Positions 54,059-61,127 of a stretch of 64,000 nucleotides of DNA are shown piece after piece (positions within the stretch are counted from its first letter, which is position 1; each line of letters opens with the position of its first letter). The stretch lies in contig MU626267.1 of the NCBI GenBank assembly GCA_025603075.1, positions 1 to 64,000 on the forward strand, written 5' to 3'. The notes under the pieces were generated by a model that saw only the letters and a program-made list of their open reading frames with translations, searched no databases and was not told the origin of the DNA. Source of the stretch: Neoconidiobolus thromboides FSU 785. Taxonomy: Eukaryota > Fungi > Entomophthoromycota. The position numbers were made by a program, and so were the translations under genes.

Positions 54059-54718
54059 TTAAGGTTTAGGTTGAACACTAGGCATATTACCATTTTGTAC
54101 TGCTAAAAACCTTTTTTCCTCAATACCCTTTAAACATCTGGGAAGTATAAGGTCCGCAGCCCCAACATTATTTATTAAACAATGCTTTAGCTCTTCGATC
54201 AAAAATTTACTGTAAATTCGACACTGTAAGCCATTACCATTAACCTCATAATTATATCTGTATAGTCCAAATTTGTTGCAATCCATAATATATCTACTAT
54301 CATTACTCCAAGCAATTAAATTCCAATAAAGTAGTTGTTTTGTATAACTAAATAAAAGTATATCGTCTTCCATTAACATACAGTATGTTTTACTTTCATT
54401 ACATTGTAATAATGCACTATAAAATACATTTTTAATTCGACACTCTCGTGGTGTTATTCTCTCACAATTAGTACTCTCTATAATCTTTTCAGGATACTTC
54501 AGTTTACCGAAACTATTCATAACTTTCTCTATTGCTTTATAATTCCTTATCTTATATTCTGAAAGTAATACAGTTTCTAATCGACTGCTTAATAGTTCAT
54601 CAATATCCTCATTACTTGGAAATAAAAATACATACGCTAACCTTAAATAAAGTAATACAAATACTACTGGTATTAACAATAACATTTTTTTTATACTAGG
54701 TCGAGTTAATAATCCCAT
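54059..54718 (-). CDS. Type II membrane glycosyltransferase-like protein (GT-A-like, MEDD motif)
   Basis: N-terminal TM; YCMLMEDDILL; C-terminal AVQNGNMPS resembling the QHxGxxS motif of GT54/PGAP4-like enzymes; Cys-rich lumenal domain. Confidence 0.6.
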   Translation of the reverse strand: MGLLTRPSIKKMLLLIPVVFVLLYLRLAYVFLFPSNEDIDELLSSRLETVLLSEYKIRNYKAIEKVMNSFGKLKYPEKIIESTNCERITPRECRIKNVFYSALLQCNESKTYCMLMEDDILLFSYTKQLLYWNLIAWSNDSRYIMDCNKFGLYRYNYEVNGNGLQCRIYSKFLIEELKHCLINNVGAADLILPRCLKGIEEKRFLAVQNGNMPSVQPKP

Positions 54719-55870
54719 TTTGATTCAATCTTCAATTGTTATATTGCTAGACTTTGTAGATTTGATATTTGTTTTATGTCCACCACTATTGTTGGATTAA
54801 ATTTTTCACAAAAAATATCAAAACAGTACATTTGTTTTTATTTATATCTTTTCATACTATGATTAATTTATTTTAATTCCGACGATTGTTGTTTACAGTC
54901 TAAATTTAATTTAAAAATAGCCTTTTAGTGACTACATCTCAATCAAATGACCTAAGAAAAAGATTAGGATACTATTTTTATATAACAATAAATCGAATTC
55001 ATGGACATTAACCTCTCTAGCTTACATTATTCTTTTAAAAGCTTTGATAGCTATACCATTCTTTTACATTATGTTACTGGAAAATGTAATACAGTTTAAA
55101 TAATAGTTATATGACTATATTTTCATAAGACCTAATTTATAACAAGTGGTATACCTTATTCGTTCATGGCATTTTACTTTCTAATTTTTAATACTAAGTT
55201 CTTAAAAGAATGTTAATGAATATATATATATTTGAGTTTTTTTAAGAGGCAAAGATACCATATAAAGAAACATAATATCCTAACTAAGATTTTTAAGCCT
55301 TTTTTATAATATATCTTTGTTTCTAAAACACCAACTGTCCTGAGATAAATATAAAGTACTATGTTTAATGCCAAGGATTTCGATGAGATTACATCAAGCT
55401 CTTCCATAAAAACTTTGTTCTTATTAGAAAGTAAACTAAATTTGATTGAAATTCAAATTATGCTGTTGTATCTCTATTGTGATCTAATTAATAATTGGTT
55501 TAATAATAAAATTTTGTTAGGATTGGATTAAAATCTAAAGGTTAGGCATGAAAAAAACCAAATAAACGACTTAAATATTTTAAAATCACCACAAATTAAA
55601 TCTGAATAGAGTTGCTATAGCAGCTACAAACTAATTTTTTTTAGAGAGTAGCTGTTTTTTTTATAAACCTTGAAAGAGCTGGGGGCTTCTAAGTGTTTAT
55701 TGTTAAGGGATAATTGAAAACAAGCGCATGATCGATAGGATAGTTAGGTAGATGTAGAAGGTAATGAGCAGTTTCTAAGGTTTAAAACATGGATTTAAAG
55801 GTTTAGATCCATTTGATTAATGTTTTTGATAAAAATTGGTAAATTCAAGCTTTTTAAACGTCTTAAATAT

Positions 55871-55969
55871 GGGGATGTATTTTTTTGTTTAACAATTTTA
55901 CTAACAATGTTTCCACTCAAATAGCGCTTAAAAGGTGGAAAAAGTAATGAAACCAAAAAAATCATCCTC
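55871..55969 (+). mobile_element. MITE copy
   Basis: GGGGATG...CATCCTC; ATAT/ATAT flanks. Confidence 0.9.
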
Positions 55970-56380
55970 ATATGGTATTCCATTATAAATCCAAGTTATC
56001 TATTAACCTAATATTTTGAATCCTTATGTAACTCCTGAATACATTTTGAGATAAACTATACTATATCTATTAAAAAGCACCAGCTGTCCAAAAATTTTAA
56101 GTATAGTCTATAAAAAACATTGACAATTTTGCAAATAAATCACTATAGTTTTTTGTATATACAATAAAATACTATGAAATTAATATACTGGATACCAATA
56201 TGCAAAAACTACTATGCAGGAATTTTTTGTTAAACTTCATTGTATTTTTAGTGATATTAGTGTTCGAAAATAATTTGACATATATGAGGCTATGTCGAAA
56301 ATAAGTCGATTTTTAATAACACAATGAGAACGAAACAAGTTGAAAATTTATTGTATAATAGCATTTATATATCAGTACAT

Positions 56381-56477
56381 GGGGATGTTTTTTAGCTTCA
56401 TTACTTTTTTTACCTTTTAAGCGCTATTTGAGTGGAAGATTTGTTAGTAAAATTCTTAAACACAAAAATATAGCCAC
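56381..56477 (-). mobile_element. MITE copy
   Basis: ACAT/ATAT flanks; internal consensus. Confidence 0.87.
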
Positions 56478-57056
56478 ATATACTGTTATAATCTCATAAA
56501 TTTCTAAGTTCTATTTATAAAGTTATAAATGCTTTTTCGAAACTTTTCGTGACCGCTATAAATAAAAGATATCAATTTTTAACTCAAATAAAAAATAGCT
56601 TTCATAAAAACCCAATATTAATTTACAATCCTCGATTAAATTATTGTTACATTCTTTTTTTCATTCATAATATTTCTTAAATATAATGATTTTTTTAAAT
56701 AAGTAAATCATGTTTAATATTTCAACTGCTAAGGATTTATGAATATTAATGTTATTTTAAATATGTTTAGAACTTTATCCAAGTATATAAGTGAAAGTAG
56801 TAAATATGGAAGGTAATATGGTTGTTATCATTTTCAAAAAGATGGGTATAAATAAATTCTAGATCTTGGGTTTAGTTTGGTGGTACTTATTTTATCTATA
56901 TTTTAAATCAGCCTAAGTTTTTAAAACTATGGAACTTTATAAAGGTCTCAAATAAAATCAATTAGAAGAGACTTCAATAATAATAGTCTATCATAAATTA
57001 CAATATTATTAAACAATTATTACAATAAACATAACAACCAATATATTTTTCAGTAT

Positions 57057-57149
57057 GAAGATTTACTTTTTGTTTAAGAAATTTATTAGTATTTTTTCCC
57101 GCTTAATAGCGCTTGAAAAAGTGAAAAAGGAATAAAACTCTAACACCCT
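57057..57149 (+). mobile_element. MITE copy (old, diverged)
   Basis: TTTGTTTAAGAAATTT...CCGCTTAATAGCGCTTGAAAAAGTGAAAAAG. Confidence 0.7.
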
Positions 57150-57206
57150 GGATATAAAATAAAGTTCAAAATTTAAACTATACCTTAATCTTTGAAATTA
57201 TGATAT

Positions 57207-57303
57207 AAGAGTGTTTTTTTTGGCTTCATTACTTTTTCCATTTTTAAGCACTATTTGAGCGGAAAAATTGGTACTAAAATTCTTAAACGGAAAAAGGCAT
57301 CCC
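57207..57303 (-). mobile_element. MITE copy
   Basis: ATAT/ATAT flanks. Confidence 0.87.
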
Positions 57304-57506
57304 ATATATATAAAGAGGTCTAAAAAGGTTCAGAAGTTTTCTAGATTTTTAAAAAATTAAGTTTTTTAAAAACTATTACTTTGTCTTTACAACTCAAGCA
57401 AAAAATCAAATGTACTTTTATTAAGTAGTTATTTGTTATCATTTACTTTGCAATAACTTAATTTATACCGCCACTCCATAGATATCAAACAAAACTCATA
57501 TCACAA

Positions 57507-57602
57507 ATGTATGAGCTCACTATTGAAAATTTTATCAAACTTGCTTACTATATCGAAACAAATGATTTGGATTTTATAAGGTTTATCCTTGATTTTTGTT
57601 AA
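57507..57602 (+). CDS. Putative 31-aa micropeptide, copy A (MYELTIENFIKLAYYIETNDLDFIRFILDFC)
   Basis: Below the ORF-track cutoff; near-identical paralog at 58978; AAATG start context; AATAAA just after the stop. Confidence 0.6.
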   Translation: MYELTIENFIKLAYYIETNDLDFIRFILDFC

Positions 57603-58517
57603 TTTTAATTTATATAATAAATGCTCCTTTCTTGCTAATATTTTTATGTTTATATTCTTTATTCACAATCAATTGGATCTGTTCCTATAGATAATCATTA
57701 GTGATACACTGGGATGTTAAACACTGCTAAAGTCATATATAAACCAATAAACTTGTACCAACACTATGTACTATTTATAACTCTTAGTATCATTTCTAAA
57801 TTAATTGGAATTGCTATTGGTTTTTAATACTTATCTATTTTACCCACACTACAGTACTTCACTAAATTTCTCATAAAAGAACAAACAATAACTTAACTCC
57901 CTTTAAGCACCCATTATAAAGTAAGATCCTTTATAATTAAACAGTATCGCTTAAATAATCCCTCCTTTTCTATCCAAAAACAATATAGGAATGCTTTTAA
58001 GAATTGTCCTTTTTGTTACATTTTCAAAATTTAGAAATCAATCAGTCAATACAGCTTTGTTCGAGCTTAGAAGTGTATTATCTAGCTGTTCATTTCATAA
58101 TAAAAATTCAAAATATTAAGCTGTAAATAAGCAAATAATTAAATAAATATATACTTTATGACTATTCAACGCATATTTGAACATCTAAACAATCAGATCA
58201 TTAACTAATTTCTAAAATGTAAAGTAGCAAAAAGGATAAATAATAAAAATATTCCCACATTTTACCATTAGAATCATAAACTTAACAGCCTATATAATAA
58301 ATATTCTTTGAACAAATTTAAAAATAAGGTTTATAATTATTATAATAAAAATTATTTAACAAACTAAAATAATGGAACCAAAAAAACAGCCTCATATTCT
58401 GTTTTAAAAAAACCTAAATACAATTTATTATTATAACTAATAACTTTATGTCTTAAAAAGGACTATTTGTTTATAGGTTGTTTGTATCTTAATTGTTAAA
58501 CTTAGTTTACAAAATAT

Positions 58518-58612
58518 GGTAATATCTTTTTTGTTTGAGAAGTTTAAAATTGACTTTTCCATTCAATACGACTCAAAAATGGAAAAAGTAGTGAAACAAA
58601 GAAGTACCTCCC
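58518..58612 (+). mobile_element. MITE copy (diverged)
   Basis: ATAT/ATAT flanks; ends in CCTCCC. Confidence 0.72.
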
Positions 58613-58977
58613 ATATGGATCGAATAATAAAGTCCGAATTTAAAACTACACACCATCTTTTTAAACTGCATTTAGAATACTTGTTTATCATTTAGGCTGC
58701 CCCTAATTTCTTAGGTTTATATTTTTTGCATAAATATCGGCCATTAAAAAATGGGCTTATTTGATAATTTTGCAATACAGTTTTCTTCGATAAGGCTAAT
58801 AATCTGAAGGTTGGTGAGCACTGCTGAAAAGTATAAATACTCTTATACGTTACTCATTTTAAAAAAATATTAACCATATTCTCAAAAAACAATAAGTTTA
58901 TTACTATCTACTCTCACCTTTTAACTTATTGCTGTATATCGCACTCTCTATAAATCAAATCTAAGGCTGCATCATAA

Positions 58978-59073
58978 ATGTATGAACTCAACATCGAAAA
59001 CTTTATCAAACTTGCTTACTATATCGAAACAAATGATTTGGATTTTATAAGGTTTATCCTTGATTTTTGTTAA
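58978..59073 (+). CDS. Putative 31-aa micropeptide, copy B (MYELNIENFIKLAYYIETNDLDFIRFILDFC)
   Basis: In-frame TAA directly before the ATG; 5 nt differences from copy A, giving 3 synonymous codons and 1 amino-acid change; AATAAA after the stop. Confidence 0.6.
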   Translation: MYELNIENFIKLAYYIETNDLDFIRFILDFC

Positions 59074-59124
59074 TTTTAATCTAATAAATATTTATTTTTT
59101 ATTAATATTTTTAGTACTTTATAT

Positions 59125-59219
59125 GTGGATGTATTTTTTTGTTTAGGAATTTTATTAACAGTTATTCTACTTAATGTTTGAAAAATAGAAAAAGTGATGA
59201 AATCAAAAAAAGTATTACC
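59125..59219 (+). mobile_element. MITE copy (diverged)
   Basis: ATAT+GTGGATGTATTTT...; starts 51 bp after the stop of micro-ORF B. Confidence 0.78.
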
Positions 59220-59722
59220 ACGTCTTAAATTTCACACATATTTTATTAAGTATTCTAATCGATTTGTGACTAATAGAACATTCAAGTTAAACAAAGTTCT
59301 ATAAATTATTGGACTTGAAATAAAGTCATAATGCTATTTATAATTGTTTATTAGGACCTTATAGGTCTACTTATAAACAAGCTACTATTAATTTTTAGCT
59401 TCATCTTTTTCTCACACTTTAATATGATCCATATTCAGTATTATAAAACCTTAATAAAATTGGTTTCACTTCAAGCTCTATTAAAAATACCATCATTTTA
59501 ATTTAGCCAATAATATCCTTTGTACTCCCTTTTCTAAATAAAAAAAGCCAATCAATTTTCAAAGCGACAAAAATAGTTACCATTAAAATACATTTTTTAA
59601 AACAAGTTAACAATGACATAAAACAACTGATGAGGTAAGCTTTAGTTCATTCTAAACATAAAGTATAAAACCACATAAACAACTACCAGCTTTCTTTTTT
59701 ATAATAATAAACAATTGAAACG

Positions 59723-60175
59723 ATGTCAGAATTAAACGAACAACAGACAAAGCAAGCTAAAGATATCTTTAACCAATTTGATACTGATAAGAGTGGTAAG
59801 ATAAGTGCTGATGAGCTCAAAAATATGTTGCCAAAATTAGGTGTTGATCTTGATGACGCTGGTATAAAAAAGATGCTCTCATCTGCTGATAAGGACCAGA
59901 ATGGAGAAGTCGACTTTGAAGAATTTAAAAAAATAGCAGGTGGTATGTTTGCTGTAGATGTAGATGAAGAAGAAGATAATCGTAAAACTTTTGATGAGTT
60001 TGATACGGATAAAGATGGCCACATTAATAAAGTAGAATTTGCAAAAGCAATGAGAGCGGACGATCCAGAGATTGAACAAGAAGAAATTGATGGAATTTTT
60101 GCTGAAACAGATGACAATGGTGATGGTTTGATTTCATATGATGAATTTTGTAAGGCAGTTAATAAAGGCCAATAA
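59723..60175 (+). CDS. Calmodulin-like 4-EF-hand protein (diverged from canonical calmodulin)
   Basis: DTDKSGKISADE, DKDQNGEVDFEE, DTDKDGHINKVE and DDNGDGLISYDE loops. Confidence 0.92.
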   Translation: MSELNEQQTKQAKDIFNQFDTDKSGKISADELKNMLPKLGVDLDDAGIKKMLSSADKDQNGEVDFEEFKKIAGGMFAVDVDEEEDNRKTFDEFDTDKDGHINKVEFAKAMRADDPEIEQEEIDGIFAETDDNGDGLISYDEFCKAVNKGQ

Positions 60176-60295
60176 AGAAGTGAAGGTGTGAAATAAAAAG
60201 AAAAAAAGTGAAAAATATTAATTTCGTGTTCAAAATTGAGTTTATTCTATATTTTATTATTCTATACACGTATTAAAGGTAATTCATTTAATTAT

Positions 60296-61127
60296 TTAAT
60301 ATTGTTTTTTTAAAAATTGTTGATAACCTATACAATTATTACAACCTATTGGATATTGATTATTAAGCTTAAGTTTATATTCTTCAATAGTATTGTATTT
60401 AGATTTATATTCTGCATCCTTACATATCCATTTAGTTTAATACAGTGTTTGTTAAAATATATTAATTTACCTCATCACTAGGTAAATAGTCGGCTAGAGC
60501 TTGAGTTTGGAACTGTAAATTTTTTAAACAGTCTGAACAAAAGGAATTAGGCTCTTGAAGTTTATTTCCACCTATTTGAATTAAATTAATGTCTCATATT
60601 TAACAAAAATATGTAATAGTGACTTACTTCTCAATGTAAACCCAATGTTTCTTTCCTTTGCCATTAATGGAGTAAAATCCACCAAATCACCGTTCTACCA
60701 ACAATGATTATTAAAAAAATCAACAATTGAATATTTGTCTTACCTCATCTCTAAAATTCATTTCCTTACACCATTGACATTTCCATAATTTCTTATTAAC
60801 TCTCAGCTTCTCAAACTTAGTACTTTGATTACAATTAAAACACTTTAATCTAACTGAATTGAACAAATAATTGTTCATCAATAAATAGCTGATTCTGTAG
60901 ACTAAATAAAGACTAAGGATAAATAATAGATAGTAAATGTAATTGTTTTCTAAATTGAGCCATGGTAAATATTGTTGAGTTAGATGATTAAGGATCTGTT
61001 CATCGGTTAAACCTTCCTTTTTTAATATTTGAGCTTCAAGAATTATAGGTTCGAAGATGACTTGAATTGTATTATTATAAATGTATTGATCGAGTTTATT
61101 TAATAGAATGAGTGCTTTAGTTAACAT
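60296..61127 (-). CDS. ima1: Ima1/TMEM201 (Samp1)-like nuclear-envelope Zn-finger protein, 4 exons
   Basis: CFNC...WKCQWCKEMNFRDE|NGDLVD...FCSDCLKN...LADYLPSDE|...YPIGCNNC after removing three GT-AG introns. Confidence 0.78.

Follow-up and report, generated by a model that had tools for sequence, protein, structure and literature searches.

The a-factor-type pheromone precursors are short, carry a cysteine near the C-terminus and are often encoded by several gene copies, and prenylation needs a C-terminal CaaX box. Several of the MSDIN precursors, from which Amanita cyclic peptides are made, also end in a cysteine. The MSDIN precursors constitute a multi-copy family of very short genes encoding 33-37 amino acids (aa), in which a conserved 10-aa leader and a 17-aa follower are placed around a hypervariable core of 6-10 aa that is bounded by two prolines and cut by a dedicated prolyl oligopeptidase (PMC5159998). 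The two 31-codon open reading frames (ORFs) of Neoconidiobolus thromboides FSU 785 that are described here resemble the MSDIN fungal RiPPs in that the putative precursor genes are very short and present in multiple copies, and they resemble the a-factor-type lipopeptide precursors in combining a short predicted product and several copies with a cysteine near the C-terminus. The predicted peptide, however, ends in D-F-C-stop, with the cysteine as its last residue, no CaaX box and nothing after the cysteine, and we rejected both an a-factor-type lipopeptide pheromone precursor and the lipidated signal that a first-pass annotation of this DNA had proposed. The same annotation had also proposed a ribosomal peptide (RiPP) precursor. 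The predicted peptide contains no proline, its sole variable residue between the copies is position 5, and it has neither the proline-flanked variable core of the known fungal RiPP precursors nor sequence similarity to the MSDIN/cycloamanide precursors, so that this proposal was not upheld either.

The pair can also be compared with lineage-specific small ORFs (smORFs) and proto-genes, such as are known from weakly transcribed intergenic DNA, with which it shares a short ATG-to-stop ORF, an absence of homologues, an intergenic-like composition and low-level, unspliced RNA. Unlike these, the pair consists of two copies that keep the reading frame with one amino-acid difference, and the predicted peptide is more amphipathic and acidic than is usual for a chance ORF. 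A further comparison is that with the concerted evolution of nearby paralogues by gene conversion, to which the locus is similar in its identical center, its ends diverged by ~20% and its arrangement as direct repeats 1.5 kb apart. Here, however, the homology spans ~155 nt only, which is near the lower limit usually held sufficient for recombination, and conversion is deduced from the pattern of differences rather than observed. We describe the pair as a candidate smORF, lineage-specific and contained in a short duplicate on which gene conversion has probably acted, and not as a discovered micropeptide gene.

The two ORFs and their setting

The window, that is, the whole stretch of DNA analyzed, covers the initial 64 kb of contig MU626267.1 (assembly GCA_025603075.1), and the genome is AT-rich with a GC content of ~26%. 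In the public annotation, no gene is found between positions 54718 and 59723. The resulting 5-kb spacer (54719-59722) contains neither an annotated gene nor a long ORF; MITE copies and palindromic segments rich in AT (57982-58261 and 58238-58536) account for most of it, and its RNA cover is low and patchy. ORFs of at least 25 aa are frequent in this AT-rich DNA, with 40 found in 5 kb. The two small ORFs and the MITEs next to them are:

57067-57307, no strand assigned: MITE copy, 200 nt 5' of copy A
57507-57602, + strand: copy A, a 31-codon ORF from ATG to TAA
58527-58618: MITE arm, flanking the two small ORFs
58978-59073, + strand: copy B, a 31-codon ORF from ATG to TAA with Asn for Thr at residue 5
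59121-59211, no strand assigned: solo MITE arm, 47 nt 3' of the stop of copy B

As reported in the first-pass annotation, each ORF runs from ATG to TAA over exactly 96 nt and is predicted to encode 31 aa, and the two starts are 1471 nt apart. Alignment of the copies likewise reproduced the five nucleotide differences, which are located at ORF positions 9, 14, 15, 18 and 24. Four of the five are at third codon positions; together they alter three codons synonymously and residue 5 once (Thr/Asn), and the last 72 nt of the ORF are identical between the copies. The start context ATCA(C/T)AAATG and an AATAAA 10-14 nt past the stop (57616-57621 and 59083-59088) are present in both copies. Neither copy is interrupted between its ATG and its TAA (n = 2 copies examined). 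Copy B has in-frame stops on either side, including the TAA noted earlier directly before its ATG (58975-58977). The antisense frame of the ORFs is open too, and the differences there are at first codon positions; an exon on the minus strand was rejected as a poor fit for that pattern.

A 76-nt core of the pair matches only two places in the window and gave no match in 100 shuffles. No further copy was found at the DNA or the peptide level in 70 kb of the contig, where the copies number two. Both copies are also present in the DNA of another strain, where contigs of a separate DNA run connect each copy with the flanking sequence proper to it, and the duplication is therefore real and not an assembly artifact. 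In that DNA, copy B carries a C>G substitution at 59030, inside the stretch that is identical between the copies, which would change Thr18 to Arg. With a single change in 96 nt, SNPs are as dense here as in the flanking non-coding DNA.

The earlier observation that both copies sit among MITEs was borne out by the elements listed above. These belong to the same family as a 615-nt MITE-like element at 55867-56481, whose terminal inverted repeats are ~105 nt long (94-nt arms, 87% complementary). The family yields 55 blastn matches in 70 kb of the contig, and its word depths in RNA-library contigs are 10^3-10^4; it is therefore embedded in many transcripts.

Extent of the duplicated unit and its mosaic of identity

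The duplicated unit is longer than the ORF and is divided into three parts that differ in their degree of identity:

57500-57655, + strand: repeat unit A, ~155 nt, from 7 nt 5' of the ATG to ~50 nt past the stop
58971-59120, + strand: repeat unit B, ending at the start of the solo MITE arm (59121)
57531-57609, + strand: 79-nt identical tract in copy A, putative gene-conversion tract
59002-59080, + strand: 79-nt identical tract in copy B
First 31 nt of the unit: 6 differences
Next 79 nt of the unit: 0 differences
Last 44-47 nt of the unit: 10 mismatches and an indel

On the 5' side, similarity ends sharply 7 nt upstream of the ATG, in agreement with the decay just before the ATG that had been described earlier. 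On the 3' side, the earlier statement that near-identity stops 7 nt past the stop is correct for perfect identity and incorrect for the end of similarity. The 79-nt tract extends from ORF position 25 through 7 nt past the stop without a difference, and beyond it the copies remain ~77% identical (34 of 44 positions, with a 4-nt indel) for ~47 nt. The flanks of the two units align no better than random or shuffled sequences, even when the MITE is skipped. Given these non-homologous flanks, the unit carries no upstream promoter region, and no promoter was copied with the ORF. A larger segmental duplication or a decayed paralogue 3' of copy A was also rejected, as the flanks score like shuffles.

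The differences at third codon positions follow the same mosaic: they are found in four of the first eight codons versus none of the remaining 24 (Fisher p = 0.002). Judged from the sequence of the two copies, this distribution points to a probable gene-conversion tract and not to selection on the peptide alone. Peptide selection alone would not produce the identity over 79 nt, because the synonymous sites and the 7 nt past the stop are identical as well. The identical tract needs either recent gene conversion or re-copying, or a function at the nucleotide level, and we infer gene conversion because no sign of a nucleotide-level function was found. Gene conversion is also the outcome that had been named beforehand as speaking against a constrained peptide, and the mosaic fits a conversion tract.

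The nucleotide-level function considered was that of a structured non-coding RNA or another constrained element, which would account for a tract that is perfectly identical regardless of codon position. We consider it very improbable. An Rfam scan of 55000-61000 gave no match over either copy at E values up to 1, and the sole weak match in this region is at 56025-56084. The folding energies of both copies on both strands are like those of shuffled sequences (z-scores of -0.17 to +0.86). Reading of the sequence revealed neither C/D nor H/ACA boxes, and the tract contains a substitution in another strain.

The explanation to which we assign the highest probability, at about even chances, is that the pair is a short duplicate of non-genic DNA in which a chance ORF or proto-gene was subsequently subjected to gene conversion. 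A local duplication of ~155 nt of DNA would have occurred in the 5-kb gene-free and MITE-rich spacer, after which the ends of the duplicate would have diverged by ~20% and the central 79 nt would have been made identical again, either because gene conversion took place between the copies or because part of the unit was copied a second time. The 31-codon ORF is most likely no established gene; it would be fortuitous or, at best, a proto-gene of recent origin, and it would be transcribed only within the patchy, low-level RNA that covers the whole spacer.

The sharp left boundary of the unit and its transposon-rich setting would also suit a piece of a larger multi-copy family, two members of which happen to be in this window. 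Such a piece could have been picked up or transported by a mobile element, or it could be what is left of a coding gene located elsewhere in the genome. The coding-like substitution pattern would then be inherited from the parent sequences. In support of such a family, the depth of the other strain's DNA over the repeat is ~105 versus ~27 predicted from single-copy contigs, an RNA run reaches a depth of 81 over the repeat versus 15 in the listed contig, and a second contig carries the C>G variant at 59030. Only two copies are found in 70 kb, however, versus 55 matches for the local MITE, and the unit possesses no terminal inverted repeats, TG..CA ends, polypurine tract or poly(A) tail; the excess of depth could also stem from chance placement of AT-rich contigs. 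We consider a family of this kind improbable, yet clearly less so than a structured RNA.

Known classes of mobile elements were rejected individually. A MITE or another transposon with terminal inverted repeats does not fit a unit that has no inverted arms at its ends and is present in two copies in 70 kb versus 55. For a pair of LTRs or a TRIM, the unit starts with ATCA and has no TG..CA ends, there is no purine-rich stretch before copy B, and there is no tRNA-complementary site after copy A. A Helitron 5' end or a retrocopy was rejected by reading, with no CTRR end and no poly(A). For the LTR, Helitron and retrocopy classes alike, conservation should be highest at the ends of the unit, where it is in fact lowest.

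Over the repeat (57467-57663), the depth is thus 3-5 times that of single-copy sequence in the other strain's DNA and in the RNA run. Further copies, perhaps better expressed, may be present elsewhere in the genome.

Coding potential of the ORFs

The next most probable explanation after a duplicate of non-genic DNA is a lineage-restricted micropeptide gene pair. According to this alternative, a predicted 31-aa acidic, amphipathic and helical peptide would be translated from each ORF. Purifying selection would act on the two genes, gene conversion would make them evolve in concert, and they would be expressed mainly outside the sampled RNA conditions. We consider it possible but doubtful. In its favor, neither ORF is disrupted, and the repeat has its left edge at the start codon. 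ATG ORFs of 31 codons or more are present in only 0.8% of the 110-nt and 7.8% of the 155-nt segments of intergenic DNA in the window. The excess of differences at third positions (p = 0.045), which is based on five substitutions, also favors a gene pair, as does the change of a single residue. When five random substitutions of the observed types were placed in nt 1-24 in a simulation, the ORF was destroyed in 56% of the cases and remained intact with at most one residue changed in 1.1% (p = 0.011); given an intact ORF, at most one amino-acid change occurred in 2.6%. The remaining 24 codons are identical in both copies and are uninformative on synonymous bias.

Several other properties count against a gene pair. 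Position -3 is occupied by C and T in the two small ORFs versus a purine in all 13 local genes (12 A and 1 G), for which the 13 long ATG ORFs of the window were taken as genes. By a codon-usage log-odds score trained on ~5,000 local codons, the small ORFs score -0.05 and -0.09 bits per codon, where the mean of chance intergenic ORFs is -0.09, and are below 91% of the 31-codon windows from real genes. Their GC content is 25.8%, compared with 25.6% for intergenic DNA and 31% for genes. Promoter homology, as described above, was not copied, and the Thr18Arg change in the other strain is radical and occurs at neutral SNP density.

Taken jointly, the coincidence of the ORF with the repeat, the substitution pattern and the amphipathicity and acidity of the predicted peptide favor a coding history, but these signals are small, rest on five substitutions and one peptide, and overlap with the reasons for which the pair was first selected. 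Start context, codon usage and RNA depth look intergenic. The constrained micropeptide put forward in the first-pass annotation is supported in part, by the simulation and by the amphipathic and acidic nature of the peptide, and disfavored in part, by the identity that extends to synonymous sites and by the intergenic-like start context, codon usage and RNA depth.

The predicted peptide and its homologues

The amphipathic-helix spacing and the acidity attributed to the predicted peptide from reading are in line with the calculated values. Its helical hydrophobic moment is 0.371, a value attained by 1.7% of its own shuffles and by one ORF in a null set of 73 chance ORFs, which start with ATG, encode 26-40 aa and were taken from that intergenic DNA. 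Its acidic content is 19% versus a null mean of 5%. These values, which are within the top 1-3% of chance ORFs, favor a gene pair. AlphaFold predicts two helices, spanning residues 6-18 and 21-30, with a mean pLDDT of 79. In a control, however, a chance intergenic ORF was predicted to form a helix at a pLDDT of 80. The predicted helix therefore carries no weight for a gene pair, because a chance ORF gives equal confidence.

No homologue was found in the sequence searches, which also counts against a gene pair. Neither peptide was on record in exact look-ups among called genes, and an exhaustive phmmer (HMMER) search against 1.84 billion representative proteins returned no match. A word-index homologue search with the 46-aa stop-to-stop frame of copy A was empty, a degenerate back-translated pattern had no match in metagenome contigs, and no usable match came from NCBIfam, the ESM Atlas or the sequences of the PDB. 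The Pfam family DUF5049 matched over 22 residues with 14.8 and 15.1 bits (E ~0.02-0.03), which is below its gathering threshold of 28.7 bits; membership in this family was rejected, and the match was taken as compositional or due to chance. Gene callers rarely call ORFs of 31 aa, and for this reason the lack of homologues is weak evidence. The proteins of the neighboring EF-hand and PPR genes, when used as queries, match only themselves, from which it follows that the genomes of relatives are effectively absent from the collections.

Transcription of the spacer and of the two ORFs

The RNA figures given here are from contigs without strand information and cover three RNA-library runs of two strains. 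The contig over copy A, the neighboring highly expressed gene and the introns verified beyond it are:

57323-58286, no strand assigned: RNA-library contig over copy A, 964 nt, collinear with the genome and unspliced, depth 15, 0 differences
59723-60175, + strand: EF-hand gene, highly expressed, RNA depth 837
60418-60469, - strand: RNA-verified short intron of 52 nt within 60201-61126
60570-60625, - strand: RNA-verified short intron of 56 nt within 60201-61126
60695-60743, - strand: RNA-verified short intron of 49 nt within 60201-61126

The left end of the contig over copy A adjoins the MITE at 57067-57307, where assemblies break. Copy A is also represented in the RNA of a second strain, by a 165-nt contig over its start with a depth of 4.5, and its presence in RNA-library contigs of two strains is in favor of a gene pair. 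The copy-specific 5' part of copy B is found in one 203-nt contig with a depth of 2.8. In the run in which the EF-hand gene has a depth of 837, the spliced gene beyond it has a depth of 372, and this run is RNA because that gene appears spliced in the contigs. RNA depth over the other unique parts of the spacer ranges from 0 to ~36. The small ORFs do not stand out from this patchy intergenic transcription because their depths of 15 and 2.8 are within the range of the spacer, and these depths are ~2% or less of those of the neighboring genes. A transcript clearly above the local background, which the RNA check proposed earlier could have revealed, was thus not seen, and RNA depth within the spacer background is a further argument against a gene pair.

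RNA depth is also relevant to the proposal that the ORFs are exons of a longer spliced gene, or that copy B is an upstream ORF (uORF) in the leader of the EF-hand gene, which it precedes by 650 nt on the same strand. A GT is present after the last sense codons, as an exon would need. The candidate donors GTTAAT and GTTTAT, however, are unlike the verified local donors GTAAGT, GTAAGA and GTAAAT; in-frame stops flank copy B on both sides; and the RNA contig of copy A is collinear with the genome. As to a uORF, the contig of the EF-hand mRNA starts at 59248 and has a depth of 837, compared with 2.8 for the 5' part of copy B. Copy B is no uORF of the EF-hand gene, because it is ~300 times scarcer than the EF-hand mRNA, and no gene is found downstream of copy A for 2.1 kb. 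We regard an exon or a uORF as highly unlikely, on a par with a structured RNA, and the two proposals remain very unlikely even when taken together.

Elsewhere in the spacer, unique intergenic sequence at 58620-58845 has an RNA depth of ~36 in one run and ~8 in another, which exceeds that of both small ORFs.

Implications of a translated or an untranslated pair

In weighing these explanations, we set the prior probability of a gene low, as for any intergenic duplicate of such short length. A more specific version of the gene pair, in which an acidic, helical and Cys-ending pair of 31 aa evolves concertedly, possibly as a small family, and is expressed only in states such as sporulation or insect infection, appears doubtful, though its probability is far from negligible. 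We know of no peptide of this kind in this early-diverging entomophthoralean fungus. If translated, the pair would be an unannotated and species-restricted micropeptide gene pair of an insect-associated, early-diverging fungus, and it would show gene conversion keeping very short genes alike. If untranslated, which we infer to be somewhat likelier, it would be a caution about short duplicates in AT-rich and transposon-rich DNA, as an intact, helix-like ORF with seemingly synonymous differences would then be possible by chance and gene conversion.

Neighboring genes

The region 60201-61126 on the - strand, whose three introns have the donors GTAAAT, GTAAGT and GTAAGA, provides a local reference for splice sites. 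The RNA contig of the EF-hand gene, starting at 59248, begins just past the solo MITE arm at 59121-59211 and gives this gene a 5' leader of at least 475 nt. This arm may serve as promoter of the EF-hand gene or contribute to its leader. In another strain, the segment 59794-59956 of the EF-hand gene is represented by two deep RNA versions, with 1 and 14 differences in 163 nt, respectively, which hints at either a close paralogue that is expressed or an allele that has diverged.
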